Positions 31,251 through 58,639 are shown, counted from the stretch's first letter. The stretch: 64,000 nucleotides of DNA from Octopus sinensis (GCF_006345805.1 NC_042999.1:66774001-66838000), one strand, 5' to 3'. A program made the numbers and translations. The notes: a model not told the origin generated them from the letters alone.

Positions 31251-31342
31251 TATATGTGTGTGTGTATGTAATTCATGAATATATGTATGCATATATGTTT
31301 GCCTGTATACTTGTATGTATATTATAATTTTACAGCTTGAAA

Positions 31343-31403
31343 ATGAATTCTACATTTTGTCTTGTCATGCTGGGGCTTTTTATCATTACAGCCGGGGCTA
31401 ATG
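31343..31403 (+). CDS. Peptide gene C, signal-peptide exon (MNSTFCLVMLGLFIITAGAN + G, phase 1)
   Basis: Acceptor ttttacag|31336, ATGAATTCTA start shared with gene A, 61-nt CDS, donor G|GTAAGT at 31404. Confidence 0.85.
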
Positions 31404-32014
31404 GTAAGTGATCAATATATCCGTTCTTTAAAATGCGTTTCATCACATTGTAATGCTGCTTATTATTTAATAGTAATGACTATATTTGATATTAAAATAT
31501 TACAATAAGTTGTTTATAATTTTCTAAAACGAACTTTTGGTAGAATTCTACCATTCCTATTACAAGATTTGTAACCGACAACACTTTAACGTATTCACCA
31601 AATTAAGTACCACTGGAGTACCGTGGTTGATCTAATCGACTGGCCCCCATCCCAGACATTTCGGGCTTTGTGCCTATATTAGAAAATAATTTTCTGTGCT
31701 TCGAGCATTTCCAGAGTCTCTGAGACTATTTACATAGAACTGGCCACAGGGGACATGCTTTATGAATTTAACCAATACCTGTGTCTCTTATTGTAAGAAC
31801 AGCTTCTAAGTCATAAACCATTCCGCCATATCGACCCAATACCCATTACTAAGAATGATAAACTACACTAAGACAATGTTTCTTAATAAGAGTAAACTTT
31901 CCGATTAACAGTGTATTATTTCCATTATTGTGAACCATGTGAAGGTCTTCCTACCTCCAAGCAGATCCAATGGAATCGGAAGCCCTGCATCACTAAGGGT
32001 TCATCTATTTATAA

Positions 32015-32244
32015 AGGCGGCGAGCTGGCAGAACCGTTAGCGCGCCGGGCGAAATGCTTAGCGGTATTTCGTCTGTCGTTACGTTCTGAGTTCAAATTCC
32101 GCCGAGGTCGACTTTGTCTTTCATCCTTTCGAGGTCTATAAATAAAGTACCAGTTTCGCACTGGGTCGATGTAATCGACTTAATCCCTTTACCTGTCCTT
32201 GTTTGTCCCCTCTATGTTTAGCTCCTTGTGGGTAGTAAAGAAAT
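32015..32244 (+). mobile_element. SINE family B (gene C intron 2)
   Basis: ggcggcgagctggcagaa head and conserved core. Confidence 0.85.
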
Positions 32245-32406
32245 ATAATGTACGTTGAAAGTTGATCAGTACGGCCGAAACAGTGTAGTAGCGTTTTTGG
32301 AAAACAAACATGACAAAAGTAGTTTCGAAATTAGAAGCTACTGTGATGTCTCTGATTTGTACGTAAGATATAACGTTCTTAAAGCAAAATTATTTTCTGA
32401 TTTTAG

Positions 32407-32543
32407 GTGACAGTGTTGCACTACATTTAACTCTATGCCGACAACGATATACAAATTCGCTTGATATTTACAAGTGTATGGCAGATAATTGTTGTAAATA
32501 TGCTCCATTGCACGAAATAAAGCAAGAAAATGATTTCGGATAA
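32407..32543 (+). CDS. Peptide gene C, terminal exon: (G)DSVALHLTLCRQRYTNSLDIYKCMADNCCKYAPLHEIKQENDFG; precursor 65 aa
   Basis: Acceptor ctgattttag|32407 in phase 1; 4 Cys; stop 32541-32543; AATAAA at 32516 and 32542; cacgaaataaa shared with the gene A 3' end. Confidence 0.8.
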
Positions 32544-32822
32544 TAAAAGCAATAATTTAAAACAGAAACGGAAACAAGCTGCCGAAATTCGTATTAACAT
32601 TAAACAGATCATTGGATCGTATTTCGGTAGATGGGTTGTTTTCGTGATTAAAGTGTGAAATATACACATAATATTATGTCTTTGTTAACATATAACTGTT
32701 TGATGTAATTATTTCCTTTTTCATAAACATTGGATACATCTCTACTTGGAAAATTTGACGACTAGTAGATTAGTCCGTTGCTTAATTGGTGTATGAAGCA
32801 ATGATATTTTAATTAGTTAGAT

Positions 32823-33243
32823 AAGGCGGCAAGCTGGCAGAAACGGTAGCACGCCGGGCGTAATGCGTGGCCGTATTTCGTCTGCCGTTACGTTCTGAGT
32901 TCAAATTCCGCCGAGGTCGACTTTGTCTTTCATCCTTTCGGGGTCGATAAAATAAGTACCGGTTATGCACTGGGGTCGATATAATCGACTTAATCCGTTT
33001 GTCTGTCCTTGTTTGTCCTCTCTGTGTTTAGCCCCTTGTCGGTAGTAAAGAAATAGGCATTTCATCCGCCGTTACGTTCTGAGTTCAAATTCCGCTGAGG
33101 TTGACTTTGCTTTTCATCCTTTCGGGATCGATAAATTAAGTACCAGTTATGCACTGGGATTGATGTAATCGACTTAATCCATTTGTCTGTCCTTGTTTGT
33201 CTCCTCTATGTTTGGCTTCTTGTGGGCAATAAAGAAATAAGAA
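32823..33243 (+). mobile_element. SINE family B, two tandem copies
   Basis: Full copy 32823-33057 followed by a 5'-truncated copy. Confidence 0.85.
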
Positions 33244-33249
33244 ATATGT

Positions 33250-34380
33250 TTAACGCAAAATTTCACGTTGGCTCTCATGAACGTTTCTGTTGAACGTTTC
33301 TGTTCATGACAAAATCGCAGACTACAGCATACACGTGATGACATAAAAATACAAATTTCACAACTTGCGAAGTAAACACAGTGATGTCACTTGGAAAGTC
33401 TGCAACAGTGACGTTGAGCATGCTTCGGTAAGCTTACGCCGACGGGGTAGTGAACCGCTGAAGCAATGTTTCGAGTTGCACAGGCGCTTCATAAGCGAAA
33501 AAAACGTCCCTGGAAGACGATGAGCGATCTGGAAGACCTGCTACGAGCTTTATCCCCGGAAATGTGGAGAAAATCCATTGATTATGTTGTTGGTTGTTGT
33601 ATGGATCTGGGCAGGTAATCCTAACAGCTGAACTGAACATGCGGCGTGTCTCTGCCAAGTTTGTACCCCGTGTGCTGACCACTGAGCAGGAAGAACATCG
33701 CGCCGAAGTCTGTCAAGGTCTCCTTCAGCATGCGGCTGATGAACCATCCTTTATGAGGGGATCAACACTGGTGACGAGTGCAGGGTTTACAGGTACGACC
33801 CTGTAATGAAGCAGCAGTGGTCACAATGGAAGAGCCCTTTATCTCCACGACCGAAGAAGGCACGACAGAGCCGCAGCTCAATCTAGAGCATGCTCGTCGT
33901 GTTTTTTCTTTTCGACATCTGCGGTATGGTGTATTGAGAATTCGTCCCCTTGGGCTAGACCGTCAATTGAGAGTTCTACTACGACTCTTTGAAGCGTGAG
34001 GGAGAACATTCAATGAAAGCGACCAGATCTGTGGAAAGCAAATAATTAGAATCTTCATGACAATAACACAACATGGTATCGCTTCTGCACCAACCCTATT
34101 CGTCAGATTTAGCATCTGCGAATTTCCATCTCTGCCCCAGGATGAAAATACAGCTCAAAAGTAGTTTTAACACCGTTGTCAAGATCAAGATCAAGAGTGA
34201 ATCGCAGAAGGTTCTCCACTCGCTTATTGAAAACGATTTCCAGGCTGGACTCCAAAAGTGGCAGGAAAGCTGGAACTGGGGTATTGTTGCGCAAGGTGAC
34301 TATTTCGAAGAAGATGATGTTAAAACTTAAGTAAAGAAATAATTCTTTATTAAACATTACTAATCCGGGCACGTTTTGTA
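33250..34380 (+). mobile_element. Degenerate mariner transposon
   Basis: DDERSGRP, MRRVSAKFVPRVLT and HQPYSSDLASANFHL remnants across frameshifts. Confidence 0.8.
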
Positions 34381-34439
34381 ACCCCATCGTATTTATTCCA
34401 GGACAGCCTTTTTTTCCGAATAGCATTGTATATTGTTTT

Positions 34440-34768
34440 TGCGACGACGCCATGTCGCATAGAGTTACTACCTTGATGACATTTTTAGTAAGGTGCTAAT
34501 CACATGTGGCATATCTTCCACAGAAATATGGCAATCTACATTTGCACTTACATCTTGGAACTCCAGGGAATCACTACCTTTTTTTATTTATTAAACATTT
34601 AGTAGCAGTCGCTTGTTCTTGGATTGCAAATGTATAACTCTTTGAAATATGATGTTATGTAACGGGCATGAGTCCAAGAGAAGTTTTGCTTCTGTCAATG
34701 TTACTATCTTCTTCAAGTCTTCAGGAAACACACCCACGTATGGTCATTTGTGTGTGTGTGTGCGTGTT

Positions 34769-34832
<64 letters not shown>

Positions 34833-35470
34833 TGTGTATGTGTCTGTGTGTGTGTGTGTGTGTGTGTGTTTGTGCGTGTGCGGGCACGCGCTGCGCGTTT
34901 AACCTCCAAGTCTTCTTTGAGGTATTCTAGTCCCGATAATTTGGGGTCGTATGAGAGGTCATCAGGATGAGAGTATTTCCTAAGAAGTTCATTTCCAAAA
35001 CGCAGGATCTTATTCTCTTCACTTTTCAGCGCTGAGGCAATGTATTTATTTTTTTGGCTGTTATTTAGCAAGTGCTGTCTGAGCGACTATGCCGCATTCG
35101 AAGGTTATCTGCACTGGTCGCAAACCTCTACCACTTCTAACTCTTCTTAGGTAGAGCCTGTCTATATCATTATTTTTATGAAGCCGATTTTAGAATCTTG
35201 CGGGTTTTGATGTTTATGTATCCAAAATGTTGGATTCAACACTGGTACTGCAAATGCATTGTGGAATATTGTCTTGTAAGAGGAGAGTTCAGACTGCTGC
35301 ATTTTTCTTAGACTTGTTCATTTTATAGTTATTCACATTATCTTCGTATGACATACTTTCATCAACGCCTAGGTACTTGTAACGTTCTTTGAAAGAGACA
35401 GGAGAGGTAGCCAGAGCATTGATGGAGAGGTTTTGCGCCTGGAGTACTAATTTCACTCGTTCAACAATCA
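34440..35470 (-). mobile_element. Probable R4/Dong-like LINE fragment
   Basis: YKYLGVDE motif on minus; heavily decayed. Confidence 0.4.
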
Positions 35471-38359
35471 AATAGTCGCATCCCTATTTCAGCTGAAAAT
35501 GTTATTAATCCCAGCTGCGTTTTGGCATTGTCAGCATTTTAGCATAAGTTTTGAAGTCAACCACAAAGAAAGAAATTATAGGTTACATTAATATCTAGCA
35601 GTTGCAAAGTAGGTGAGGGCGGGCAAAGGTGTGGAAGAGAAGCGATTTGTTTTTTGTGCCGGCAATGATAAAGGACTTAAGGTCAAAAAGAGTCAATGAT
35701 CACTTTGTGTGTTTCTCTCCCTATCATCGATGTTAGTGTGTGTACGTCACAATAACTAAGCGGTTCGGCAAAAGAGACCGATAGAATAAGTGTTAGGCTT
35801 ACAAAGAATAAATCCTGGGGTCGATTTGTTCGACCAAGGGCGGTGCACCAGCATGACTGCAGTCCAAATTACTAAAACAAGTAAAATATATATATATATA
35901 TATATACACACACTTTTATTGAAACGAAATATTTCCACCCAAGAATTATAAGGGAACGAAGATTCATACTGTATATCTGATCTTTATAAGCAGGAAGCTT
36001 ACCTTAGTTCTCGTGCTCCTGAATTCTCAGGACTTTTCGGTCTGCAGATGCTCCCACTATTATCCTTCTCTTCCACATCTTTGGCTGCCCTTACATTCAA
36101 TACTGTTATCTACTCTTGTCTCCCTGAACACAACAAAACAAAAACATTAAAGCCCTTAGAGATCAATCATGAGGAAAATAGACATAACAGGTCTTGCTTA
36201 TTAGAATCGTCTCCAGAAACACAAGCTTCATTCCCTCCAAGACGGTCGTGAGCGTTATATTAATTGCATTATGTGGAAATGTTCTATACCCTTGTATTGG
36301 ATGTATGATATAACGAAGCAGGGAGGGAAGAAAGTATATTCACGACGCACTGCTATTACTATTGCACGAAACTTTACATTCACAATCACGGCTCACAGTG
36401 AACTGCTAGAAACCCGAAGTGCCAGTCGTTCAGTTTGGTTTGTTTTGTTTTTGTTTTGTTTTTTTACTTTATAACAATGTGACAGTCCATGTTCAGTAAC
36501 TTGCGGGTTGGTTGGAATCCTTCCACAACAAAAATATTCAACATCACCACCAAAATAACATTAGCATCATGCACGCACGCAAATATGTGTGAACATTATG
36601 AAAGCATGGGTATAATGAACAAATACAAAACGAAGAGAACAAAGATGAGAGAAGATTAACAAATATTGTAAAACTTTGAAAAATAAAATGGAAGGGAAAG
36701 AATCGTCACATTTCGGCCGCTAGTTCTTCATTGGAAGAACTGTATAAAATGAAACTATAAAAGAGGAAATGTCTTAGCAAAGGGAGAGAGGGAGAGAGAA
36801 AGAGAGAGAGAGAGGAAAAATCCAGATGAGTGGATAGTAGCCAGTTAAGAATGCGGGTCTAGGCTGATTGAAAAAAGTGAACAGTTGTATCTATCTGTGT
36901 TTTGAGATTGCATAAAGGTGAGTGCTGTGTGTGTGTGTGTGTTTGTGATTGTGTGATATTTGTGCGTGTGCGCGTGCATGTGTGCGTGTGCCTGCGCGCG
37001 CATGTATATATATGTGTGTGTGTAGAAATACGAAACTATGAGTATGTGGGTTATTGAGGGTATGGAATGTTGGTCTGTGTGTGAGTGTGTGTGTGTGTAT
37101 AATCGTTATGTATTCGTTCGAAATGCGTGAAAAGGAGGAGTTGCGAACGAGTGCGAGTGTGAGGTATAAAGAAAGCTAGAAAAAATGTGGAGAGGAGATA
37201 GAAGAAACATGGATTTGAGATGATAAAGTCCTGAAAATCCAAAGGTTGTGAAGATTGTAAAGTTCGCACGTAAAGATGAGTTACAAAAATTAGCCGAAGA
37301 AAGTTTAGTCTGACTGTATGGCTTGGAAGAGATGGTGTGCAATGACACGGAAGAGGAAATCTGGCGCAGGGTAAGAAAATGTGTTAGACAGAAGAGTAAG
37401 GAGAGTAAGAAGATGAAGGACATTGGTCAAGGAGGAAAGCACTTGTGTGCGCGTGCACTACGTGTGTGTGTGTGAATGTCTGTGTGTATGAATGTGTGTG
37501 TGTGCATGAATGTGTCTGTGTATGTGAATGTGTGTGTTAATTACCTTAAGGGTTTGTGATAGGGAAGGTGTGAAACAGAGTGCTCACGCAAAGCGGAGGT
37601 AGCAGGGCAGGGGTGTGAGAGAGAAGAAACGTCAGCCAATTATATGACTGTCAACATCTCACAATTGTTTATTATAATAATATAAATAATATATAAAGAT
37701 ATGCATGTGTACATACATATATGTACATATCTACATGTATATGTATATATACATGCATATATGGGTACAGGACATCGAAAAAAAATTGAACACAATCAGA
37801 AACGAAAACATAAAAACAAAAACATAGAAACGAACTTTTTTCGAACAACAGGAAAAAAAACAAGCAGAGAAACGAGACATGCAACATAAAGAATATTCCC
37901 CTTCTTCAGTTGTCCCTGTTTCATTTACTACGCGTTTATTATATATTCATTAACTATATGAATTACAACAACCATTCATTGTTCTTAAATATATTGATGA
38001 AATCCATTTTCATTTTCGTAATATTATAAAATAGTTGAAACGAGAATCACTGGATAAATACAATTTTCTGTCAATAACGCGTTATAAATAATAGAATGCA
38101 GTTCAAATCCAGAAAAAAAGCTATCAATAATATGTAAGAGATGAAGGATTCAAGTGAGATAGTTGTGAGAAACGACATGCATTGGTAGAGTTGTTTAAAC
38201 ATATGTCGAAGGTTAATCTGTGTGGCAGAGACAGTGTGATGACGTTTTGTAAAACAGATATGACAAAAGAGCAGTTCTGAAATTACAACCTAGTATGTTG
38301 ATGTGACTTTTACATATATAACACAATGGCTTTAAACACGTATTCTTGTCTAATTTTAG

Positions 38360-38556
38360 AAATTATGCAAGCGAAATGTGAAACTTTCTGCCACCAGCTA
38401 CATGACTCCGAGGCAACTACGTATGATTTAACACAGTGTCTGATTAAAAGATGTGGCTGGCATCATGGACAAGGAAATTATGTCCCAAAAAAGATTGTGA
38501 ACATTCGAGGAGAGTGGACTTTCGCAAGGAATAAAAAAAAAAGAAAACATTTTTAG
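38360..38556 (+). CDS. Orphan terminal exon D: (E)IMQAKCETFCHQLHDSEATTYDLTQCLIKRCGWHHGQGNYVPKKIVNIRGEWTFARNKKKRKHF
   Basis: Acceptor ctaattttag|38360, open in phase 1, C-x3-C-x15-C-x4-C; both flanks homologous to those of the gene C terminal exon. Confidence 0.7.
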
Positions 38557-38745
38557 ATATCAAAAGCAATAATGTTAAACTTAAAGGAGAAACAGCCTGC
38601 TGAAATTCGCATTGACACTTAAGATCGCGCAGGGTTGCATTTCGGTATATAGGTTATTTCTTCCTTCAATGTAAAATTCGTGATTAGAATATGAAATATA
38701 TAATGTAAGATGAAGTCTTCATGTAATTATATTTATTTGATGGGA

Positions 38746-38895
38746 GGCGGCGAGCTGGTAGAAACGTTAGCACTCCTTTCGGAGTCGATTAAATAAGTAC
38801 CAGTTACGCACTGGGGTCGATGTAATCGACTTAATCCGTTTGTCTGTCCTTGTTTGCCCCCTCTATGTTTAACCTCTTGTGATCAATAAAGAAAT
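38746..38895 (+). mobile_element. SINE family B, internally deleted, in the 3' flank of exon D
   Basis: Head and tail match the family with the middle missing. Confidence 0.75.
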
Positions 38896-39313
38896 ATATA
38901 TTTGTTTGATGGAATTATTTCATTTTTATAAAAGTATTTACTTGATATGGGTCACATCTTTACGTAGAAAATTTGAAGACTAGTAAAGTGGAAAGTTGCT
39001 GAAGTGATGTACGAATTCAAGACGTTTTAATGAGTTAAACCAACGACTTTTAGTGAGACTAATTCTACAAAGAAGAGGTATGAAAAAAAAACTACAAATA
39101 TAATTTTGTTTCCACTTACATATCTTGCAAAATATAGCCTAATTTGTTAATGTGCACTTTCTTTCCCTGCTAAGGTTACATTTGTATATTGTCAGTGAAC
39201 CACCGACTTTCGAGTAGTTGAACAAGATATCATTTTCATATTTCCAACTTGACTATAAACAGAAAAAAAAAGAAAATCCACTGCTGAAAATTATGTGTGG
39301 ATGTATCTGTGCA

Positions 39314-39615
39314 TGGGAGGCGCAATGACCCAGTGGTTAGGTCAGCGAACTCGCGGTCGGAGGATCGCGGTTTCGATTCCCAGACCGGGCGTTGTGAGTG
39401 TTTATTGAGTGAAAACACCTAAAAGCTCCACGAGGCTGCGGCAGGAGGTGTTGGTGACCCCTGTTGTACTCTTTCGCCGCAACTTTCTCTCACTCTCTCT
39501 TCTTGTTTCTTGAGTAACGCTGCGATGGACTGGTGTCCCGTCCAGCTGGGGAGAACACCTACGCCACAGAAACCGGGAAACCGGGCCCATGAGCCTGGCT
39601 AGGCTTGAAAAGGGC
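39314..39615 (+). mobile_element. SINE family C
   Basis: Highly similar to 23566-23855. Confidence 0.85.
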
Positions 39616-39735
39616 GACGTTTATCGTATCTGTGCATGAGCATGCACACACACAAGTGTGTGTGTGAGTGTGTGTGTTTGTATATGTGCGTGTGGAGAGA
39701 GAGTGTGTGTTTGAAGTGGTGTACAGATATTGTAT

Positions 39736-40857
39736 ATTACATGGGAAAATGTGAGCAAAAGAAATACTATCCTTAAGATTATAAATCTGGAAAAGTTCAG
39801 GAGAAGTTATTACATCTGGTAAAGTACAGAACAAGAAAATTTTTACTTAAATATTGCAGCTAAGGATATAATTTCAAATAAAATATTTGGATTTAGAAAA
39901 TATTAGCTTTTATTAAAACTGTTCATAAAATAATTATAACGTGTGAGGATTTTAATCTGACTTTTTTGAATCTATACATGCAAGTGTTTGTGTATAGACG
40001 TGCAAACACGCTTTGTTATGGGTATGTATAACACTCGTTCGTATATTTTTTGCATATATTGCGCTGAAGATAGAAGAAAATTCGCCATTAATGTGGAGTC
40101 TTTTTAAATATCTTCTCAGTAGCCCGCTTTCAATTGTATGCATTTATAGTGTTTTTTCGGTAGCTTCGTAATGCTTGGACATTAATTCAGTATGAAGCAG
40201 GTAAGTCTTGTTTTGACCTTCTCCCTTAAAATAATATTATTAAAACTAAAAATTTTATTACAAGTTATTACTTCTATTTGTTATTACTTGTTACTTCTAT
40301 TAAAAATTTAAAATTACTCGATTTAAATATGTTTTGCTCTTTAAAACAATTCATTTTTTAAATTATTAATTAATAAATTGAAATTTTAAAATAAATTATA
40401 AAATTAATAGTAGTACATAATTAGTTAGTACAATAAATAGAATAATACCAAAATTAGTTATATATTAGAGTAAAATCTAACTATAACAACAAATTCACAG
40501 GAAAATTAGCTTGAGTTATTGCCAAGTTATTGCCAAGTCTTCACATTTAGTCTTTAGTACTTTTTTACAATATGAATTTTCCTACCATATATTCTATTCT
40601 GCTTTGCATAAAACTTTAGCTATATTGGTACTTCGAGCTCTCATTTTTTAAGTATTCTAGTGTATCAATACTTAACAACATTATGGTACCTCTTTTTAAG
40701 TATAATTTTTAATATTCAAATTTTATCCTTAGCTGCAATACTTAAAGTAAAATTTTTCTTGTTCTATACTCTCCCAGATGTAATAACTTGTCCTGGACTT
40801 TTCCAGATTTATAATCTTAAGAATATTATTTCTCTTGCTCGCATTTTTCCATGTAAT
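39736..40857. mobile_element. Non-autonomous DNA transposon with about 145-bp TIRs
   Basis: 39736-39880 is the reverse complement of 40712-40857 (roughly 85%); AT-rich non-coding interior. Confidence 0.75.
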
Positions 40858-41582
40858 CCATGTTTTTTCCAGGTTATGCTATTATGCTAATAATATGTCA
40901 AATGTGTCAATTAGCGGTGTCGTTGATACTTTTCCCTACCTCAATGATGCCGGTGGCATATATTAAAAGTCCTAGTGTAGAACTATATTCATAAAAAGTA
41001 TAGTACTATATTATCACTCTCAAATTTGAGAAACAAACACTCATAATTTTTTTTTCTTTTGAAACATCCTTGCATGAGATGATACCATGAAATTCCTCGA
41101 ATTGAACTGCATCATTTAAGCTTCAGTAAGATATAGTTTGTTTTTAAATAAAGAAAGTTAATTATATTTAAATCCAATTTTTTGCCTTGCTTATATTTTT
41201 TCATGATATTTCACCTCATAACTTTTTCGACACAAATTTTTGTTGCATGGGACCAAAACTATGAAATTCTTAATGCTTTCTTCTATCACTGAAGCTAAGA
41301 TAAGTATATTTTGCTTTTTAAATAAAAAGTTTATTTAGATCTAAACTTGACTGGTGACGTTACTTACTCTCCTGTAACATTGTTACAAATTTTAATATAA
41401 ACTTTTTTCTACTGGAACAAATATCAATTGTTATGCCAAAATGTAGCTAGGGAAAAGTACTCTTCAAAAATATTAGCGGTTTTGCATTTGGTTAAGAACT
41501 GAATTAGCAACAAGCTTTGAAAGATGTGAGTAAATTGCGTGTGAGTAAATAATAATATTATTCAGCTACTACCGTAGTTCGT

Positions 41583-46354: not shown

Positions 46355-46766
46355 ATTAAGGTTGTTTCTGCAGATAGTCTAGGCAGCACTAAATTTCGCT
46401 ACAACGTTTCGTATCGAGACGTCAGATGTAAACAAGCAATGAGATCGCTATATGTGGTAGCTATATAAGCGATGTATTCAGAGACAAGAATGAGTTTGAT
46501 GGGTGGTGATGAAGGTACAACAATCCCCGAAATATGTTATGTACACTCATTACCAACTTTTGTCTATGATCTCTTACGAAACGTTGTTGTAAGAAATCAG
46601 TACTGGATGTAGTTTCCTAGAATATATGTAGAAACAACTTTTTAAATAATGTGACAAGCACTGCTGATGCAGTAGAACGTAGTACTGACTTATAAAAACC
46701 TAATATACTTCATGTTATATTGTGTTTGCATAACGAAGTATTGTGTACCTACAGACCTTTTACATA

Positions 46767-48056
46767 CGAGTGGCGTTCAATAAGTAATGCCCCTGACCCA
46801 CTTCCCATAGCAGTAGAGCAACGAAACCTGGCACAGTTATTAATCTTTTTCTACATAGGAACCACCCAGAGTTACGCATTTGTCCCATCGTTTGATGCAG
46901 CTCTGAAGACCGTTTTTGTAGAAGACCCCAGCTTGGTCCTCCAACCACGACGTGACTTCAGAAATCAAGGCTGCATCATCTGGGAAACGCTTTCCTTTCA
47001 AAAACAACTTCATGGCTGGGAAGAGGTGAAAATCAGAGGGTGCAGGTCAGGAGAGTAGGGAGAATGGGGGATGAGTTCATAGCCGGACGCCTGTGCTTCT
47101 GATCTGGCGACACGCGAGTTGTGGATCGGAGCGTTGTCCTGCAGGAGGAGGATGCCTTTTCTGATCTTGCCCCGCCTCTTGATTTTGATAGCTTCTCTTA
47201 ATCTCCTCAAAAGTGAAGCATAATAGACTCCTGTAATTGTGGCACCCTTTGCCAAGAAATCTGTCATCATTACTCCGTCCTGGTCCCAGAAGACTGTGAG
47301 CATGACCTTGCCAGCGGAGGGCTGCACCCTTGCCTTCTTTGGAGGAGGTGAGTCACGGTGCTTCCACTGCATTGACTGGGCTTTGGTCTCTGGATCATAG
47401 TGATGGACCCAGGTTTCATCCTGTGTGATCAGTCTTTTGAAAAAGTTTGACTCATCTTCTTGGCACATCTTCAAATTCATCCTCGCGCAATCGACGCGTT
47501 CTTGCTTCTGGAAAGGTGTGAGCAGCCTGGGAATCCATCTGGCAGACACCTTTTGCATATGCAAATAGTCATGAATGATATTTTCCACAGACCCGGTACT
47601 AATCTTGACCTCATGGGCTATTTGGCAAATAGTTATGCGTCGATCTTCCAAAATGGCAGCCTCAACTTGACGAACAGATGCCTCATGAATGGCAGAAGGG
47701 GGCGACCAGATCTGGGAGCTGTTTCCACATTTTCCGATCATGTTTGAATTCACGATGCCAGCGTTTTACAAGGTCATATGATGGGGCATCATCACCATAA
47801 GTTACTTTTTTTTCATCAAAAGTCTCCCGTGGTGTGCGTCCTCTCAAATACAAAAACCGCATCACTGCTCGACACTCAACAGGCTCCGTTTCACACTTGA
47901 CTCAGTTCAAACACCTGTAAATCAGAAACCACAATTAGTTCAGAGCTGTAATTTGCCACTTAATCTATAGAGATATGAATAATTGCACATGCAAAATTTC
48001 AGCTAGATCAAACAACTGCAAGGGGGTCAGAGACATTACTTATTGAACACCCTTCG
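46767..48056 (-). mobile_element. Full-length defective mariner, same family as 27734-28997
   Basis: TA-flanked TIRs; ITQDETW and LQDNAP; start codon reads ACG; frameshifts at both ends of the ORF. Confidence 0.95.
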
Positions 48057-48126
<70 letters not shown>

Positions 48127-48154
48127 CATACATATATATATATATTATATATAT

Positions 48155-48185
<31 letters not shown>

Positions 48186-48335
48186 GTATGTATATACATA
48201 TACACATATACATATGGGTCTGGCAGCGGTCGTGGTAACATCAACATTTTTTCTCTGCCCCAAGGCACATTCCTAACACGCCAGCTGAGTTTAATTCGTC
48301 CCAGTCGAAAGACGACTGTTTGTGATATCCTGTTA

Positions 48336-48373
<38 letters not shown>

Positions 48374-48721
48374 GTTTTTACGTATTATTTTTGTATTCAT
48401 ATTCGTGTAACATCGTCCGTTTTTCCGTCCTTGTTTTGTATACATTCGAAGCTTTCTTCCAAGGAATCTAATGCACCTAGCTTAGTTTTTCCTTGGGGCT
48501 GGCCAGGTTGGAGCAATCTCAAGATTAATTAGCCGAAATTGCGAGGATGATCCGGTTCTTGACGGAAGATTGAAGGCTTCCAGGCGTGATGCTAAACTTA
48601 TCACGCTTGATACTCTCGGAGTATCAATGAATTTGAATCAAACTGTTTTGATCCATACATATAACTCCCAATGTGTTGAGTGCCTTCCTTTCGTTTGTCC
48701 ATATATATGTATGAATGTATA

Positions 48722-48755
<34 letters not shown>

Positions 48756-48763
48756 TATATATA

Positions 48764-48813
<50 letters not shown>

Positions 48814-48872
48814 TATATATTCGCAGATAGATGCTGGCTAGCTGCTAGATAGATAGATAGATAGATAGATAT

Positions 48873-48938
<66 letters not shown>

Positions 48939-50095
48939 GTGTGTGTGTGTGTATATATACTGACATATGTTTACATACATGCACACATACAAAACTTTTA
49001 TATTCACAGAATATATACATGTCGACAAATGCATTGAAACCTTTTGGATTTACTAGTGCTAGAGTGAGCCACATAGTGACCACTCTCTTATATTTATTTT
49101 TGTATAAAATATTATAATATGTTATGAAATATATAATAATCCAGGTTTCTCGGGGCACTGGGCCACTTGGTGTTGAATAGGTATACTATTAAATTAGTAT
49201 CTAATTCTCTCACCCTTATTAATTAATTATATATATGTGTGTGTGTGTGGTGTGTGTGTGTGTGTGTGTGTGTGTTCATCATTTCACTAGGCTCAAATAA
49301 CTATCCACAATTACCTCCCCTTGACCAAACTTTTTTCATATACATAACCGTTGTATCCCCTCAATACAAATTCATTAAATCTCCTTTGTTATAAACGATC
49401 ATCTCCTTCTTCTCTCATTGTATACATAACATATTAACTTGATTTACTTGATTTACTTATTTATTTCCTTATTTTGTCTTTACCTGTGTTTATAATATAT
49501 ATAAAAACACAATTTACTTTAAAACAAATTACCAATAGAATTAACTTAACAGATCAATAAATTTAGGGGTGTTAGTTTTCTTACTAAATAAATATGTATT
49601 ATCAATACAATTTTTTAATAATCCACAATTATTCATCTTTTATTATCATGTTTTCTCGAACTCTTTTTGAACATAGGTACTTTTGTGTATTAATATAAAT
49701 ATTAATATAGTAATCATACAATTACATATTTATATAATTTTTACGCATATAAATAATACATAGATTTTTCATATATTTATTATACATATTTAATCTATTG
49801 GATAAATAATTTGACTACTAATATATTTTATTACTAATCTCTGTAATAATAAACTATAAATATATTTACCCCAATATTAATATGATATTTACATACATGA
49901 TAAACTACTATTCTTTATATATCTCCATACCTTCTAACTATCATCTAGAATGTATTAATATTTATTTACTTTCCAACAAAATATACACCCCATGTCCCCT
50001 TAAAAGGTTTATACCAAACTTATCCATATAACAATACTCAGCTGTATTGTTCAGTATACTTAACAACTAATGATATACTTGTATATCTTTTTTTT

Positions 50096-50180
50096 CTGCC
50101 TCTGACGAGATACTGCTTTATCAAATGATTTAATTATTACAATTATAATTTTTCAGTATGAATCGAAACAGCTGTTAGAA
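50096..50180 (+). ncRNA. Type-I hammerhead-like ribozyme, copy 1
   Basis: CTGACGA GATACTG...CAGTATGAATC GAAAC AGCT GTT|AG; weak stem I. Confidence 0.6.
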
Positions 50181-50498
50181 ACCATGTCTAAATTTGCAAT
50201 TAATAAATATACTTATTCATTGATGTAACTCCGTTTTTGAAATTTTTCTTCAATAAATATAAACCTTTGTTTATCTAATTACTTATTATTTATGAGTATT
50301 ATGATTAATATCACAACAAATACTAGGTAATGAACCAGTAATTCATTGGATATTACTATCCCTTACTGAGGCTTATCCACCCTCCAATTGAACGTTTTAT
50401 ATATGTATATCTCATACTCAAGTTTGCCTCGTGTTTCACGTTGTTTTCGAATTTCATGTGCTTTACGTTTTGTGACGTCCTGTACCCATATATGCATA

Positions 50499-50544
<46 letters not shown>

Positions 50545-50594
50545 TATATATACACATATATATATATTCGCAGATAGATAGCTGGCTAGCTTGC

Positions 50595-50683
<89 letters not shown>

Positions 50684-50972
50684 GTGTGTGTGTGTATATA
50701 TACTGACATATGTTTACATACATGCACACATACAAACACTTTTATATTCACAGAATATATACATGTCGACAAATGCATTGAAACCTTTTGGATTTACTAG
50801 TGCTAGAGTGAGCCACATAGTGACCACTCTCTTATATTTATTTTTGTATAAAATATTATAATATGTTATGAAATATTATAATAATCCAGGTTTCTCGGGG
50901 CACTGGGCCACTTGGTGTTGAATAGGTATACTATTAAATTAGTATCTAATTCTCTCACCCTTATTAATTAAT

Positions 50973-51022
<50 letters not shown>

Positions 51023-51843
51023 CATCATTTCACTAGGCTCAAATAACTATCCACAATTACCTCCCCTTGACCAAACTTTTTTCATATACATAACCGTTGT
51101 ATCCCCTCAATACAAATTCATTAAATCTCCTTTGTTATAAACGATCATCTCCTTCTTCTCTCATTGTATACATAACATATTAACTTGATTTACTTGATTT
51201 ACTTATTTATTTCCTTATTTTGTCTTTACCTGTGTTTATAAATATATATAAAAACACAATTTACTTTAAAACAAATTACCAATAGAATTAACTTAACAGA
51301 TCAATAAATTTAGGGGTGTTAGTTTTCTTACTAAAATAAATATGTATTATCAATACAATTTTTTAATAATCCACAATTATTCATCTTTTATTATCATGTT
51401 TTCTCGAACTCTTTTTGAACATAGGTACTTTTGTGTATTAATATAAATATTAATATAGTAATCATACAATTACATATTTATATAATTTTTACGCATATAA
51501 ATAATACATAGATTTTTCATATATTTATTATACATATTTAATCTATTGGATAAATAATTTGACTACTAATATATTTTATTACTAATCTCTGTAATAATAA
51601 ACTATAAATATATTTACCCCAATATTAATATGATATTTACATACATGATAAACTACTATTCTTTATATATCTCCATACCTTCTAACTATCATCTAGAATG
51701 TATTAATATTTATTTACTTTCCAACAAAATATACACCCCATGTCCCCTTAAAAGGTTTATACCAAACTTATCCATATAACAATACTCAGCTGTATTGTTC
51801 AGTATACTTAACAACTAATGATATACTTGTATATCTTTTTTTT

Positions 51844-51928
51844 CTGCCTCTGACGAGATACTGCTTTATCAAATGATTTAATTATTACAATTATAATTTT
51901 TCAGTATGAATCGAAACAGCTGTTAGAA
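51844..51928 (+). ncRNA. Type-I hammerhead-like ribozyme, copy 2
   Basis: Identical to copy 1. Confidence 0.6.
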
Positions 51929-52240
51929 ACCATGTCTAAATTGCAATTAATAAATATACTTATTCATTGATGTAACTCCGTTTTTGAAATTTTTCTTCAA
52001 TAAATATAAACCTTTGTTTATCTAATTACTTATTATTTATGAGTATTATGATTAATATTCACAACAAATACTAGGTAATGAACCAGTAATTCATTGGATA
52101 TTACTATCCCTTACTGAGGCTTATCCACCCTCCAATTGAACGTTTTATATATGTATATCTCATACTCAAGTTTGCCTCGTGTTTCACGTTGTTTTCGAAT
52201 TTCATGTGCTTTACGTTTTGTGACGTCCTGTACCCATATA

Positions 52241-52327
<87 letters not shown>

Positions 52328-52328
52328 C

Positions 52329-52375
<47 letters not shown>

Positions 52376-53139
52376 TATGTATATATATGTATGTATATTT
52401 TTCATTTATATAGATAGATAGACAGATAGATAAATAGATACATACATACATACATACATACATACATACATACATACATACATACATACATACATACATA
52501 CATACATACAGACATACATACATACATAGACTTATACATATACATTGTCTGTTAGACAATAGACTGAGGAAGAGTAAGAAGATGGGTAATAGAAGACAAG
52601 GTTGAAAGCGTTTATAAGATCATTTGCGTACATGTGTGTAAATGTATGTGTGTGTGCGTGTGTGTGTGTTAATGACTTTAGGGGAATGTGGCAGAGAAGT
52701 CGTGAAACAAAGTACTCAGGCAGATTTGAAGTAACAGGGAGTGGGGAAGAGAAGAAAAACCAACCAATTATATGACTGACAATTAGTATCTCCTAACTGC
52801 TTATTACATATTCATTAACAATATGAATTACAACACCCACTTAGTGTTCCTAAATTCATTGTTGAAATCCATTTACATTTTGAAATAACGTAGATTAGTT
52901 GAAACGATAATCATTGGATAAATACAATTTTCAGTCAATAAAGTGTTATAAATAAAAGTATGCAGTTCAAATCCAGAAAAAGCCATGAATAATGTGTGAG
53001 GCAGGGAGAATTCAAATGAGAAAGTTGTGGGAAAAGACAAGCATTGGTAGAGAGTTGTTTTAAACATAATATATATGTTTAAATATATATCAGGATCACA
53101 CACAGCATATAGGTACACTGCAACATAATTTCTTTTCCT

Positions 53140-53385
53140 CAACAGGCCTTGCCCTGTTTAACATTGTCCCGAAAGAGATAAAAGAGGGAAAGGATCCTGT
53201 CACCTTTAAACGGAGTCTGGACAGATTTCTTCAAGGAATACCGGATAAGCCACCCATACCTGGATACAACTCACTCCTTGACTTAAACAGGATTTAGATA
53301 ATCCTATCAGGTGGTGCTAATTAAGTTAGACATGGCCTGAACCAATCTTTGGTCGAAATATATCTAAGTTTATCTAAGTTTATAT
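53140..53385 (+). mobile_element. 3' end of a CR1-like LINE inserted in the pre-exon E block
   Basis: GLALFNIVPKEIK..FKRSLDRFLQGIPDKPPIPGY..SLLD; tail of atctaagttt repeats; interrupts a block contiguous in other units. Confidence 0.7.
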
Positions 53386-53799
53386 TGTAAGTTAATCTGT
53401 GTGATAGAGGCAATACGATGACGTTTTGGAAAACATATGGCAAAAGAGCAGTTCTGAAGTTATAACCAGTTATGTTGAAAGCGATTTCTTCATAATCAAA
53501 AAAACAATGATTTTAAAATGAACTTAGGAAGGAATTTCAACCGTGTTTCGTGGTCTGCTATCACAACAGCTCCTTTATAGGATCCAGTTAGCTCAAGACA
53601 TCATCAGGAAGAACCACGTCCGGTTTCGGCCACTGTTCCTCTACCGTTATGACGTGGTGCCACCTCACTTTCGGAGGTGTCTTCAGCTCTGGTGTTGGGT
53701 ACATGTCTTCTTTCTTCTGTTCCCTGGCCTCTTCGATGTAGCGTCAACGAGAGTCAGCCTTATCAAATTTTTTTCTCTTTAAATACCTGCTAATTTTAG

Positions 53800-53900
53800 T
53801 ATATACTACGAATGAATGTAACGACTCCTGTCTACGAAACTATACAGCCCATAATAATAGTACCCGATTTTTCAAGTGTACGAAAGAAAATATTTCATAA
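53800..53900 (+). CDS. Orphan terminal exon E: (V)YTTNECNDSCLRNYTAHNNSTRFFKCTKENIS (3 Cys, possibly decaying)
   Basis: Acceptor ctaattttag|53800, phase 1, C-x3-C-x15-C, fourth Cys replaced by Ile, stop at 53898, AATAAA 53899-53904; homologous flanks. Confidence 0.55.
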
Positions 53901-54822
53901 TAAAGTCGCACATTCCCTATTACGACTCAGGGTGATTTCAGATATTAAAAGTAATAATTTTAAACGGAAAAGACAAACGACCTGCTCTTATTCCTACGGA
54001 CGAGTTATTTCTCTTTTTTTATGTAAAATTACGATTATGAATTAAAATATACATAAAACAATGTAAAATCTATGTTCACTTATAATTCTTTGATGAAATT
54101 ATTTAATTATTATATAAGTAATTACTTGATGCATATCACATCTCTACGTGGAGAATTTCTTGGCAAGCAAATCGGAAAGTTGCTAAAGGCATGTTCGAAT
54201 CCAAGATATCTTAATTAGTTTAGCAGAAATTTGCGACGAAGAAAATCATTTATACAACAGTAATTCCTCTGAAGAAAGTTATGAGAGAAAAACCTCCAAA
54301 TTTATTCTTGTTTCCTCTTACTTATACACATTTTGCGAAGTATAGTGTAATATATTAATCTCAATTCGCTTACCTCGCTACGTCTGCATCATTTGTATAT
54401 TGTCATTGGAACACAGCATTTCGAGTAATTGAACAAAACATCATTGTTCAAGCAGATATATAATTCCAATATTACTATATGTGTGTGTATGTGTAGTTAA
54501 TTTCAATGGCCAAATTCTGCCTAGACTGATGAGATTCTGTACAAACATTTAGTTTAGTGAACAGGCGGGTGTCTGTGTCTACATGTAGGACTGCATCTGT
54601 GTTTTGAGATTGCAGAAGGCGGAGTGCTGTGTCTGTCTGATTTCATGATGTGTGTATACAGTGGTCTTGAAATACAGAGGCATAAAGATGTGGGTAAGCG
54701 AGGTTGTGACGTTTTGTATAGTGCGTATGTATAATCGCTACGTTATTGTTAGAGATGCGTGAGAGTAAGTAATTGGGACGAATGTGAGTGTTAATATGAG
54801 CTATATAGCTACGTAAAAGAAA

Positions 54823-55052
54823 GGTGGCGAGCTGGCAGAAATGGTAGCACGCCTGGCGTAATGCGTGGCCGTATTTCGTCAGCCGTTACGTTCTGAGTTT
54901 AAATTCCTCCGAGGTCGACTTTGTCTTCCATCCTTTTGGGGTCGATAAATTAAGTACCAACCACGCACTGGGATCGATGTAATCGACTTAATCCGTTTGT
55001 CTGTCCTTGATTTTCCCCTCTGTGTTTAGCCCCTTGTGGGTAGTAAAGAAAT
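54823..55052 (+). mobile_element. SINE family B
   Basis: Nearly co-linear with 32823-33057. Confidence 0.85.
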
Positions 55053-56140
55053 ATATATAGAGAAATATATATAGAGAAGTAAATATATAAAGAGAAATAA
55101 AGAAATATACATAGCAACGTAAAAGAAATGCAGAGGCGTGATAAAATTGTATGAGAGACGTGGGTGTGAGATGCTATTAATGAGGAATTCACTGATATAC
55201 AAGTAGCTACAACACTAGTGCAAGGAATGTTTTGCTTTTAGAGGGAAGAAAATTTGGGAAGACAAGAGAACTGGGTTAGAAATGAATGAATGGCGTTAAA
55301 GAGGGTGAAGAAGAAATCAGGTGGAGCGTAAGGTGAGAGCAGGAGCGAAGGTGAACTGAAAGAAAATTAAGGGTAACATTGGGGAAAAGAGAAGAAATGA
55401 CTAAAATAAATAACTGATGGAAAATTGTAAATAAACAAATACATAAAAACACAACACCGTCGAAAAGTTCAGAGCGATAAACAACAGAACAAATGTCGAG
55501 AAAGTGCAACTGCCCATATTATGTTAAGGTGGAATAGAAGGTAACAGACACACAGGGTAGCCCCAAAATAGGTTTATAGTCATTCAACTATCTCTTTCGC
55601 ATTCATATATTAACAGTTTAGATCTTAATTAAAAAAAAAAATATGAAACCATTATTCTATGGAAGTTTAGTTAATTGTAAGATAGAAATTTAAATGTAAT
55701 AAAATGTTTTCAAAGAAATTTAAAGTGCCTACGTGATAACTGTAAACCTACTTTTGGGCCACCCTGTATATGTATGCATATGATGGGGGTTTGAAGCGTT
55801 TATAGCGGAAAAGAGAGAGTCAAAGATGATACTTCATTTTCAATGCATGGTTTAGAAGGGATAGTGAGCAATTATATGAAAGAGGAAATCTGATGCAGGG
55901 TCATGAAATCTCTTAGACAATAGACTGACGAAGAGTGAGAAGATGAGTAACAGAAGAAAAGGTTGAAAGCGTTTGTGCGATCGATTGCGTATGCGATCGA
56001 TTGCGTGTGTTAATGACCTTAAGCGATTGTGGGAGGGAAGTTCTTCAGGCAAAGTGGAAATAGCAAGGAGTGGAGAAGAGAAGAAAACTCAATCAGTTAT
56101 ATGACTGTCGATTAGTATCTCATAATTGCTTATTAATTGC

Positions 56141-56555
56141 GTATGAGTGGCTGTGTGGTAAGTAGCTTGCTTAGCAACCACATGGTTCCGGGTTCAGTCC
56201 CACTGCGTGGCACCTTGGGCAAGTGTCTTCTACTATAGCCTCGGGCTGACCAAAGCCTTGTGAGTGGATTTGGTAGACGGAAACTGAAAGCCCGTCGTAT
56301 ATATGTATATATATATGTATGTGTGTGTATGTTTGTGTGTCTGTGTTTGTCCCTCCCCCCAACATCACTTGACAACCGATAGTGGTGTGTTTACGTCCCC
56401 GTAGCTTAGCGGTTCGGCAAAAGAGGCCGAAAAAATAAGTATTAGGCTTACAAAGAATAAGTCCTGGGGTCGATTTGCTCGACTAAAAGGCTCTGCCCCA
56501 GCATGGCCACAGTTAAATGACTGAAACATGTAAAAGAAGGTAAAAGAAAAAGAGA
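56141..56555 (+). mobile_element. SINE family A inserted in the pre-exon F block
   Basis: Full head-to-tail match; flanks rejoin the duplicated unit. Confidence 0.85.
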
Positions 56556-56899
56556 ATATGTTCATTGTAAATTACAACAACCACTTATTGTTCTTAAGTT
56601 CATTGACGAAATTCATTTAAATTTTAAAATAAATGAGAATAATTGAAATGATAATTATTGAATAAATGCAATTTTCTGTCAATAACGTGTTATAACTAAT
56701 AGTTCAAATCCAGAAAGCCCAATGAATAATGTGTGAGGCAGATAAAGAATTCAAGTTAGAAATTTGTGGGAAGAGATATGCAATGGTAAAGAGTTGTTTT
56801 AAACATAATAAAGGTTGTAAGTTAATCTCTGCGATAGAAACAGCTTGATGACGCTTTGGAAAACAGATATGACAAAAGAAGAATTCTGAAGTTACAACC

Positions 56900-57365
56900 A
56901 GGTGTACTGACCGTGAACAATAATTTTAAAAGAAAATTATATTTTTCAAATTTTAGAATTTTCTAGGTGTCACTGTCGATTTTTCTGCCGACGAAATCAT
57001 ACATACGAAATGCATCGTGATCGGTATTTCGAGTGTCTGAAAAATAAATGTCTCATCCGATAGTTGTAAATTGTCTTCAAAGTACTCAACAAAAGGAACA
57101 AAATGATTTCTGATATTAAAATCAATAATTCTAAGCAGAAAAGCGCGACCATCTGCTCAGCGGCTGTGAGGAGAAATCATTGAATCACTATCCGTGAGTT
57201 ATCAGAGGATATGCAGATTAGTTACGGTTCAGTTCATTATCAGTGAAGATTTGGGTATGAGAGGCGTGCACCAAAACTGCTTTCAGCTGACCAACAAGAC
57301 ACTCGGGTTTCAGTTGCACAATATCTCCTTGATTGTGTCGGAAACGATGAAAACTTTTTTTAAAC
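56900..57365 (+). mobile_element. Mariner N-terminal fragment inserted upstream of exon F
   Basis: ITIRELSEDMQISYGSV..SEDLGMR..D..TRVSVAQYLLDCVGNDENF remnants. Confidence 0.7.
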
Positions 57366-57670
57366 TTTTCGTAGGCATATGAGCAGGTATCGCCAAGTTT
57401 TTGGCAACATTTGAAGTAGATTCTCTGCTGAACTTACTCTCTCGTGGCCAATTCGACAATCACACGCTACACACCTTCCTTCCAAGCACTGCTGCAAAAC
57501 AGTGGAATTGAACTAGAACGTTAGAACTTAGTGCACTTGCATATCAGAGTTTGAGGTCAATCTGTGCCAAGCGGCTTTGCATTGCGTGCTTCGTTACTAT
57601 GGCAACAGTCTGGATACTTATTGATCAGACTACGTATATAAAACAATGATTTATTCTATTCTAAACTTTG

Positions 57671-57777
57671 TTCTTACTCTACGGCTATGTCTAAAGACTT
57701 GCCGACGACTACGTAGATACGATCCAACTTCGGTTCCGTTTAGAGAGTGTCTGAAGGATAAATGTAACACTTCGTAA
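57671..57777 (+). pseudogene. Orphan terminal exon F with mutated acceptor: (V)LTLRLCLKTCRRLRRYDPTSVPFRECLKDKCNTS
   Basis: Intact C-x3-C-x15-C-x4-C with the first Cys 17 nt into the exon as in D and E, but the acceptor position reads ctttg| instead of ttttag|; AATAAA 57841; homologous 3' flank. Confidence 0.6.
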
Positions 57778-58639
57778 GATTTCAAGTATATACGAAAACA
57801 TTGTAGCCTTTCATTGTTTTAAATTTTTGTCAATGCGCGGAATAAAGCAACAAAGTGATTTCAGATCTGAAAACCGATAACTCTAAACAGAAAAGACAAA
57901 GGGGCTGCTGAAATTTCGCATTGCCACTTGACAGCTCACCGGATCATATTTCGGAAGATGGATATTTTTTTCTTTGCTGTGTAAAACCCTTACTTATCAC
58001 AACAAATATATCACACACTACGAAATCTGTGATCACATATTTGTGTGATGGAATTATTTCATTTTTAATTACTTGAGGCTGATGATGACTAGTAAATTGG
58101 AAAGTTGCTAAAGCGTAGTACGAATCCAAGACGTTTTAAATAGTTGAATCAACCGCGTTTAGTGAGATTAATTCTACTATAAAGAAAGAGTAAACAACCT
58201 ACTAATATAATTTTGTTTTCACTAACTTATTATACAATTCAATAAGTTAAACATACTGCTTTAGTGAAGAGAAAAATCATTTTCTACTTGACTAATTCTA
58301 CACAGAATAGTGAACTCCACAATGTTAATTTTGTTTCGCCTTTCTTATATATATTTTACGTAGTGTAGTGTAATCCACTGATATGCATCCCGTTTCCCTG
58401 CTAAAACTGCATTTGTATGTTGTGAATGGACCACTGAATTTCGAGCAATTGAACAAAACATTATTGTTTAATTTAAATTATTTAATTTCAATATGATTAT
58501 AAGAAGAAAAGAAAGAAAATCCACTATAGAGACTTATATATACGGTATTACTTATTCTGGGTATTCCTCACTAAAGGAATATCCTCGCTTCATACATCAA
58601 TTAAGCAACTAAATTACTAGCCGTCAAATTTCGTTCTAT

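Follow-up and report, generated by a model that had tools for sequence, protein, structure and literature searches.

Terminal exons duplicated without their leader in an octopus cluster of cysteine-rich peptide genes: candidate alternative last exons behind a single signal exon

In the CALCA gene (calcitonin/CGRP), common 5' exons together with the signal peptide are joined either to a proximal, polyadenylated terminal exon or to distal exons, and in Drosophila lola and mod(mdg4), the latter of which trans-splices, arrays of alternative 3' exon cassettes are situated behind common 5' exons. In case of molluscs, the FMRFamide gene of Lymnaea stagnalis, as well as that of Helix and Haliotis, contains one signal-peptide exon which is alternatively spliced to different, mutually exclusive sets of peptide-encoding 3' exons (PMC4208409). 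Here we describe a stretch of 64,000 nt of Octopus sinensis DNA (GCF_006345805.1 NC_042999.1:66774001-66838000), referred to as the window and numbered from its first letter, in which a gene for a small, predicted secreted peptide rich in cysteine (Cys), gene C, is followed by the units D, E, F', F, and G. It appears about evenly balanced that D-G originated as exon-only duplicates which served gene C as alternative last exons, the array being partly decayed by now. That the octopus-specific family as a whole diversifies by duplicating only the terminal exon behind one promoter and leader, with the choice among copies made via alternative splicing and polyadenylation, is possible, but falls somewhat short of an even chance.

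Similar to the Lymnaea FMRFamide gene, the octopus locus belongs to a mollusc and has one signal exon and alternative downstream peptide exons, the latter being proposed here from sequence. The Lymnaea gene differs in having two alternatives, which encode unrelated amidated neuropeptides and are proven by cDNA, whereas up to five or six paralogous Cys-rich exons, all of them genomic predictions, are found in the octopus. As in CALCA, the choice between a proximal and a distal terminal exon would yield different secreted peptides; CALCA is, however, a vertebrate hormone gene with two non-paralogous alternatives, no exon array, and no diversifying evolution. The genomic layout of lola and mod(mdg4) fits that of the octopus locus, for which usage is proposed here, and it is these genes that represent the true mirror image of loci with variable first exons. 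Their products are nuclear BTB zinc-finger proteins and thus, unlike the octopus peptides, neither secreted nor hypervariable.

The initial annotation, which had proposed a mutually exclusive choice of last exons, had regarded the locus itself as the mirror image of the clustered protocadherin and UGT1 loci. Protocadherin and UGT1A indeed share with it tandem paralogous variable exons and a constant part, but their variable exons are first exons with promoters of their own, selected by promoter choice, whereas those of the octopus are promoterless last exons. Given terminal exons with stop codon and polyadenylation (poly(A)) signal, and an array free of promoters, the comparison holds as an analogy only. 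As far as such analogies reach, CALCA and Lymnaea FMRFamide are the closer precedents in function, and lola and mod(mdg4) in layout.

With respect to the mode of evolution, the closest parallels are conotoxin-type families, in which leaders and flanks stay conserved around a mature peptide with fixed Cys scaffold and otherwise hypervariable sequence, and in which the clustered genes undergo birth-and-death evolution. The same mode applies to MgCRP-I of mussels, reportedly a hypervariable family of secreted Cys-rich peptides with a conserved leader. In both cases each copy has a signal exon of its own, which the downstream octopus copies lack, and no sequence, Pfam, or PDB relationship of the octopus family to either was found. 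To our knowledge, an arrangement of this kind is not known among toxins or antimicrobial peptides, whose gene copies normally each retain a separate leader.

The genes of the octopus cluster consist of three exons, namely a tiny non-coding exon 1 behind a TATA promoter, a signal exon of 68 nt, and a Cys-rich terminal exon. Gene C and the units downstream of it, which in part carry short interspersed nuclear elements (SINEs), are composed as follows.

26203-26322, + strand: promoter and non-coding exon 1 of gene C, with TATA box tatataag at 26271-26278 and donor aag/gtaagt at 26322/26323
31336-31403, + strand: signal exon of gene C, internal, 68 nt, with acceptor ttttacag, ATG at 31343, 20 codons, and phase-1 donor G/GTAAGT
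32407-32543, + strand: terminal exon C, proximal to the leader, with acceptor ctgattttag and AATAAA at 32516 and 32542
36893-39282, + strand: unit D, with about 1.47 kb of upstream flank, exon D (38360-38556), and 3' flank; SINE at 38774-38898
52548-54479, + strand: unit E, with upstream flank, exon E (53800-53900; acceptor ctaattttag, phase 1), and 3' flank
54595-57150, + strand: unit F', with upstream flank, SINE (54820-55055), repeat (56139-56548), and exon F' (56957-57063)
57640-58525, + strand: unit F, with exon F in register at 57671-57777, canonical scaffold of four Cys, full 3' flank, and no upstream flank
58684-59082, + strand: unit G, upstream flank only, with no exon behind it

Gene C is considered to be a complete three-exon gene, because a promoter/exon 1 cassette sits 5 kb upstream of its signal exon. 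This cassette is paralogous to the one of gene A (5351-5480; nhmmer E=3.6e-46), and the two agree in the TATA box, the block upstream of it, and the donor. In the Octopus vulgaris reference, where window positions 1-25699 align with chromosome OX597816.1 (GCA_951406725.2) at about 70.25 Mb with 96-98% identity, the deposited model P0001 begins in the equivalent exon 1. Due to the conserved ttttacag acceptor that precedes both of them, the signal exons of A and C are regarded as internal. The signal exon of gene C, which encodes MNSTFCLVMLGLFIITAGAN, had been described correctly with respect to its extent and phase-1 donor, and its acceptor, ATG, and G/GTAAGT donor were all verified; it is not the first exon of the gene, since promoter and non-coding exon 1 lie upstream. 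Terminal exon C carries four Cys in an atypical pattern, with Cys1 replaced by His, three codons deleted, and CC at the end.

A single promoter and a single leader are located upstream of all alternative terminal exons from C to F, and neither recurs between 32.6 and 64 kb. The promoter/exon 1 profile detected copies only at 5.4, 20.0, and 26.3 kb, with no match of E below about 6 beyond 26.3 kb, and over the whole window the signal-exon profile detected those at 8.96 kb (A) and 31.34 kb (C) only. According to profile and scan of open reading frames (ORFs) and donors, the + strand downstream of gene A contains no signal exon other than that of gene C. A scan of the + strand from 32.6 to 57.7 kb for an ATG followed by a hydrophobic stretch and a phase-1 GT donor, which recovers the true signal exons, revealed nothing credible, and the shared D-type flanks, which were aligned, read, and scanned, contain no hidden signal exon. 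Profiles and scan therefore agree with the earlier statement that the region from 32.6 to 57.7 kb is devoid of promoter cassettes and intact signal exons, and extend it to 64 kb. The relic signal exon that had been suspected at 35493 has no + strand profile match; the only one nearby is on the minus strand (E=51), and the candidate was rejected as a chance match.

Alternatively, the downstream exons or the D-G block may possess a private leader or promoter, transposon-derived or provided by upstream ATGs, which is not homologous to the cassettes of A and C. Signal exons of this family diverge fast, those of A and C having only about 27 nt around the ATG in common, and in the deposited model P0002 a terminal exon of the family is preceded by a 5' exon that does not belong to it. 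Furthermore, in-frame upstream ATGs with weakly hydrophobic stretches occur in D (MALNTYSCLILEIMQAKC...) and F (MIYSILNFVLTLRLCLKTC...). Considering that the scan from 32.6 to 57.7 kb gave no candidate, that no TATA/exon 1 cassette is present in the array, and that the units follow each other head to tail too closely to accommodate a leader, a private leader is unlikely. The ATGs of D and F are not conserved between units and are probably by-products of the pyrimidine tract. Read without splicing, D (38324-38556) and F (57646-57777) both show such in-frame upstream ATGs and weak hydrophobicity (MALNTYSCLILEIMQAKC... and MIYSILNFVLTLRLC..., respectively).

Unit D and its relatives are recognizable by their flanks. 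About 1 kb of upstream flank is common to D, E, F', and G at 75-86% identity, and in case of D and F' the homology extends over at least 1.47 kb; 3' flanks of about 0.7-0.9 kb are common to D, E, and F at 71-76% identity. The part of the upstream flank from -170 to -430 shows weak but significant homology to intron 2 of A (10543-10736, E=2e-3) and of B (22873-22650, E=5e-5), and on this ground the D-type upstream flank is taken to be the ancestral intron 2. For the far-upstream part (-430 to -1467), no homology to the introns of A, B, and C was observed, except for SINE matches. Neighboring units abut head to tail, as the 3' flank of E ends at 54479 and F' starts at 54595, and the 3' flank of F ends at 58525 and G starts at 58684. 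Gene C has the proximal 125-170 nt of the upstream flank and the 3' flank in common with the units, at identities like those from unit to unit, whereas A and B are clearly more distant.

In the simplest reading of these homologies, a segment of about 2.5 kb, with its 5' breakpoint inside intron 2, would have been tandemly duplicated several times. Such a breakpoint implies a duplicated unit composed of the terminal exon plus flanks, as the initial annotation had proposed, and the long flanks of D and F' without a signal exon, the intron 2 homology, and the abutting units are all in good agreement with it. The composition of a whole-gene tandem array, with promoter, signal exon, and mature exon in each unit, is found in A, C, and the A-type copies of the reference, but not in D, E, F', F, and G.

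With a profile built on the unit, nhmmer detected seven terminal-exon copies in the window, namely A (10948), B (22457, minus strand), C, D, E, F' (56957), and F (57671). Stop codons and an AATAAA or ATTAAA are present in C, D, E, and F', along with ttttag acceptors in phase 1, which are compatible with the donor at 31403; F is without acceptor and G without exon. Exon D (acceptor ctaattttag, phase 1) encodes C-x3-C-x15-C-x4-C followed by a tail of 33 aa, and exon F', behind an intact acceptor caaattttag, encodes the Cys scaffold plus one extra Cys, i.e., five Cys.

Much of the earlier description of these exons proved accurate. The acceptors of C, D, and E follow CT(A/G)ATTTTAG and open the frame in phase 1, and the position of the first Cys is 17 nt into the exon (codon 6) in C, D, E, and F, with His in C. 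All four terminal exons from C to F exist, but a fifth copy, F', and the flank-only unit G had been missed. Consequently, the 3.8 kb between E and F contain not only the unit homology, SINE, and mariner sequences that had been named, but also the extra unit F' plus the repeat at 56139-56548. The shared upstream motif and 3' flank are both real, although the motif at about 56850 belongs to F' instead of F. Exon F keeps the register of the scaffold, but not the homologous acceptor. As to the AATAAA, for which a similar position in all four exons had been stated, its distance from the exon start is 99-170 nt in C, D, E, and F, and the frame crosses it in C and D.

For the comparison of exon and flank evolution, the 31-codon cores of D, E, F', and F were used, which align without gaps. 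In pairwise comparison, 41-62% of the nucleotides differ between these cores (44-68% outside the Cys codons), but only 20-29% between the corresponding flanks (Fisher p=7e-4 to 9e-15 in the five flank-sharing pairs). The proportion of nonsynonymous differences (pN) exceeds that of synonymous differences (pS) in 5 out of 6 pairs. Cys1, Cys2, and Cys3 are the only columns that are invariant in all four peptides; 15 of the 16 cysteines are kept, and pairwise identity amounts to 21/24 at Cys positions and 25/162 (about 15%) at all others. The cores contain no insertions or deletions, where the rates of the flanks predict 0.8-1.9 per pair and about 2.6 over the four lineages; according to our own estimate, the probability of finding none is about 0.07. 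Taken together, hypervariable cores, invariant cysteines, and the absence of insertions and deletions suggest that the exon-only copies were translated after their duplication. The flank divergence and the survival of frames and cysteines had been noticed before, but the exons have diverged far more than the flanks instead of simply surviving.

As an alternative, D-G may be dead partial duplicates, products of unequal crossing-over that were expressed for a short time at most and are now decaying as pseudo-exons of a birth-and-death cluster. In this case the excess in the exons would result not from selection, but from some mutational or gene-conversion peculiarity of the family. We consider this a serious explanation, though a doubtful one that stays clearly below an even chance. 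Under neutral decay exons should be as divergent as their flanks, but a 2- to 3-fold excess was observed in every flank-sharing pair. It is also hard to reconcile with neutral decay that all three invariant columns are cysteines against the low identity elsewhere, and that frameshifts are absent in the cores. If gene conversion had left out precisely the exon in each of the pairs, this in itself would imply selection. Moreover, those fragments of the cluster that are truly unusable did lose Cys, ATG, or donor: the inverted exon B keeps two Cys, and two orphan signal exons of the O. vulgaris reference, located in locus L002, have lost either the start or the splice site.

L002 29632-29738 and 40613-40712 (O. 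vulgaris reference): orphan signal exons, one with ATG changed to ACG, the other with donor GT changed to CT

Several observations, most of which speak for dead duplicates, weigh against the use of D-G as alternative last exons. The ratio of nonsynonymous to synonymous substitution rates (dN/dS) is close to 1 and can be summarized as only about 1-1.6; the young pair of the reference gives 1.2, and the old pairs, in which sites are saturated, give 1.0-3.7. Significance is reached only for the pair D-F, at about p=0.01 in an estimate made by hand and not derived from a tool. Thus, of the check that had been suggested earlier, the exon divergence does exceed that of the flanks, but dN/dS is not significantly above 1. 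Synonymous sites are more diverged than the flanks as well, and the complete genes A and A' are no exception (pS 0.14, pN 0.15, intron 0.04); therefore hypermutation targeted to the exon, or conversion or recombination of the flanks, could contribute.

Lesions are frequent, too. Three of the five downstream units are visibly defective: exon E has Ile at the position of the fourth Cys and its unit contains insertions at 53072-53384 and about 53518-53775, the second directly upstream of the acceptor; the homologous acceptor of exon F is mutated (ctaaactttg), with an AG at 57627-57628 that leaves the frame open; and unit G has no exon. In case of F', the 3' flank comprises only about 90 nt and is followed by a mariner fragment (57160-57360) which separates F' from F. 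Exons C and D no longer have the canonical stop behind the last Cys, and their frame crosses the ancestral AATAAA (32516-32543 and 38530-38556, respectively) to stop about 25 nt past it, and the mRNAs of both might be without stop codon if the first AATAAA is used. Due to its two AATAAA and good acceptor, termination at C should dominate, and the distal exons are 6-25 kb away across transposon insertions. Dead partial duplicates are abundant in this cluster, as is evident from an orphan promoter (19949-20113), the orphan signal exons, and the inverted B, and an exon-only duplication need not be adaptive. Finally, protein look-ups found an annotated protein for gene C and units D-G nowhere. In exact look-ups against a collection of 15 billion proteins, the precursors of A and C, the leader joined to D, E, F', or F, and the two reference isoforms were all absent; these negatives are uninformative, since the intact genes are absent there too.

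If D-G were nevertheless used as alternative last exons, the following course of events may be envisaged. Exon-only duplication gave rise to D, E, F', F, and G, all without promoter, exon 1, and signal exon, and the duplicated cores would have stayed translated while being driven apart everywhere except at the cysteines. As secretion needs an upstream leader, for which the signal exon of gene C is the sole candidate on the + strand, a transcript would either end at C or read through the poly(A) site of C. In the latter case, the donor at 31403 would be spliced in phase 1 to a distal terminal exon with a stop codon and poly(A) signal of its own. D and perhaps F' would be usable today, with E, F, and G disabled recently. 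Docking and selector complementarity as in Dscam was not found between the intron behind the signal exon and the unit flanks, where only AT-rich chance matches at different sites occur.

C, D, E, and F' have in common a block of about 45 nt, gatgacgttttggaaaacagatatgacaaaagagcagttctgaa, which precedes the acceptor by about 110 nt (at 32290, 38241, 53420, and 56850, respectively). By eye it is better conserved than its surroundings, and A and B are without counterpart. This block might be an intronic regulatory element.

A sister case is given by locus L002 of the O. vulgaris reference, which lies upstream of the window. It has one promoter (6581-6722), one signal exon (10001-10061), and two intact terminal exons with eight Cys each, at 11973 and 16457, between which neither a promoter nor a signal exon was found. 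Over the full length of the duplicated unit (11782-12715 and 16266-17199), the identity amounts to 94.35%. Within it, the exons differ by 9.3% and the flanks by 3.7% (96.3% identity; p=0.002), and pN is 0.099 compared to 0.037 in the flanks (p=0.003), with a pS of 0.081. An exon-only architecture may thus have arisen at least twice, in C-G of the window and in the 11973/16457 pair of O. vulgaris, with exons evolving faster than flanks in both while the cysteines stay fixed; we advance this tentatively, as something rather less than evenly likely.

In the deposited protein CAI9719436.1, the signal exon of L002 is joined to the distal exon (100% match) and the proximal one (74%) is skipped. The model continues via a cryptic donor into exons far downstream, which, like the origin of the junction, reduces its weight in favor of alternative last exons. 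In the annotation pipeline of the reference, assemblies from Iso-Seq and RNA-seq were used along with ab initio predictions (PMC10700109). Since ab initio predictions are mixed in and the models are chimeric, the distal-exon junction is a hint and not a proof.

The three deposited models of the family (L001 10001-26306, L002 10001-56468, and L003 10001-17337) look chimeric, and re-annotation is needed. In P0001, a paralogous signal exon of 68 nt is read out of frame ahead of the real one; P0002 contains the aforementioned non-family 5' exon; and P0003 leaves the distal terminal exon via a cryptic donor, TAT/GTAAAG, and ends out of frame in another family exon. As these models chain exons of neighboring paralogues over 14-46 kb and all signal exons have the same phase-1 donor, it is conceivable that the downstream exons are used via other leaders, in long read-through or chimeric RNAs which start at gene A or at the orphan 20.0-kb promoter. 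We regard this as very unlikely, because the signal exon of gene C is the nearest and would be included or compete; the chimeric models, for their part, may be artefacts. The A-type gene of the reference is part of a tandem repeat with a unit of about 10.65 kb, which is present at least twice in full and once in part (L001 3116-12435 and 13767-27207, compared to window 1-12030), and the 3' breakpoint of this repeat falls inside the mature exon (window 11069), which leads to hybrid exons. Clearly, partial duplicates of all kinds arise in this cluster.

Upstream of gene C, the window contains two further paralogues and the orphan promoter.

5351-11132, + strand: gene A, complete three-exon paralogue serving as outgroup, with promoter/exon 1 at 5351-5480 and signal exon at 8956-9023
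19949-20113, + strand: orphan third copy of promoter/exon 1 (nhmmer E=2.9e-10), with TATA box catatataag and an apparently intact donor gag/gtaaga
22351-22457, minus strand: terminal exon B, inverted, two Cys left, signal exon not found

The TATA box of gene A (tatataag) is located at about 5429, exon 1 ends with ctg/gtaagt at 5480, and the terminal exon (10948-11132) encodes eight Cys. The protein predicted from gene A matches without difference the last 81 aa of P0001, a 'hypothetical predicted protein' of O. vulgaris. The intron of B (22498-24334) is homologous to intron 2 of gene A and inverted relative to the promoter at 20.0 kb, and B looks like a gene killed by inversion. Behind the orphan promoter there is no signal exon of its own, and the next acceptor on the + strand is that of the signal exon of gene C; it could be an alternative promoter or a relic of gene B.

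As judged from sequence, the family is an orphan family of small secreted Cys-rich peptides encoded by a lineage-specific octopus gene cluster, of which the window represents the 3' part. A profile search of 5.8 billion proteins and a HMMER search of 1.84 billion representatives matched only three O. vulgaris models, all from this same cluster. The Pfam search gave no match, the sequence profile search of the PDB chance matches only, and Foldseek no match in the PDB. For the peptide of D, AlphaFold2 predicts a helix-loop-helix over residues 2-31, with helices at 2-13 and 20-31 and a predicted local distance difference test (pLDDT) score of 75-81 (mean of the whole model 64.9), each helix bearing one Cys pair. 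At moderate fold confidence, the peptides may therefore be built on a scaffold of two helices and four cysteines. Plant alpha-hairpinins and scorpion toxins of the kappa-hefutoxin type have two antiparallel helices stabilized by cysteines in a CX3C...CX3C arrangement. The predicted pair of helices, each with a Cys pair, is similar to these, but the second motif is C-x4-C and no homology is detectable, so that the likeness to Cys-stabilized alpha-helical hairpins would be one of resemblance and not of membership.

The larger gaps of the array are filled by SINEs, mariner copies, microsatellites, a local duplication of 1.75 kb, and stretches of several kb that are single-copy within the window. 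Two mariner-type elements, at 27631-29003 and 46720-48128, are similar to each other, and one of them is situated inside intron 1 of gene C. The former contains the Pfam domains Transposase_1 and HTH_48, and the latter was assigned by its similarity to the former. The local tandem duplication of about 1.75 kb (48745-50487 and 50737-52523) is rich in microsatellites and lies in the 13-kb gap between D and E. A palindrome of 174 bp, nearly perfect and similar to a miniature inverted-repeat transposable element (MITE), is inserted at 59081-59254, exactly where the homology of unit G stops.

If D-G were never used as alternative last exons, the locus would clearly illustrate that a functional array can be mimicked by exon-only duplicates if the family evolves fast, and the models of the cluster would need to be re-annotated. 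The old copies C-G and the young pair of the reference allow birth, use, and decay of alternative terminal exons to be compared side by side. If, on the other hand, the reading of D-G as alternative last exons is true, a small library of hypervariable disulfide peptides would share a single promoter and a single signal peptide. This would be a compact way to diversify peptides of the venom, defence, or signalling type, and a peptide locus with variable last exons would join the short list of exon-array genes.

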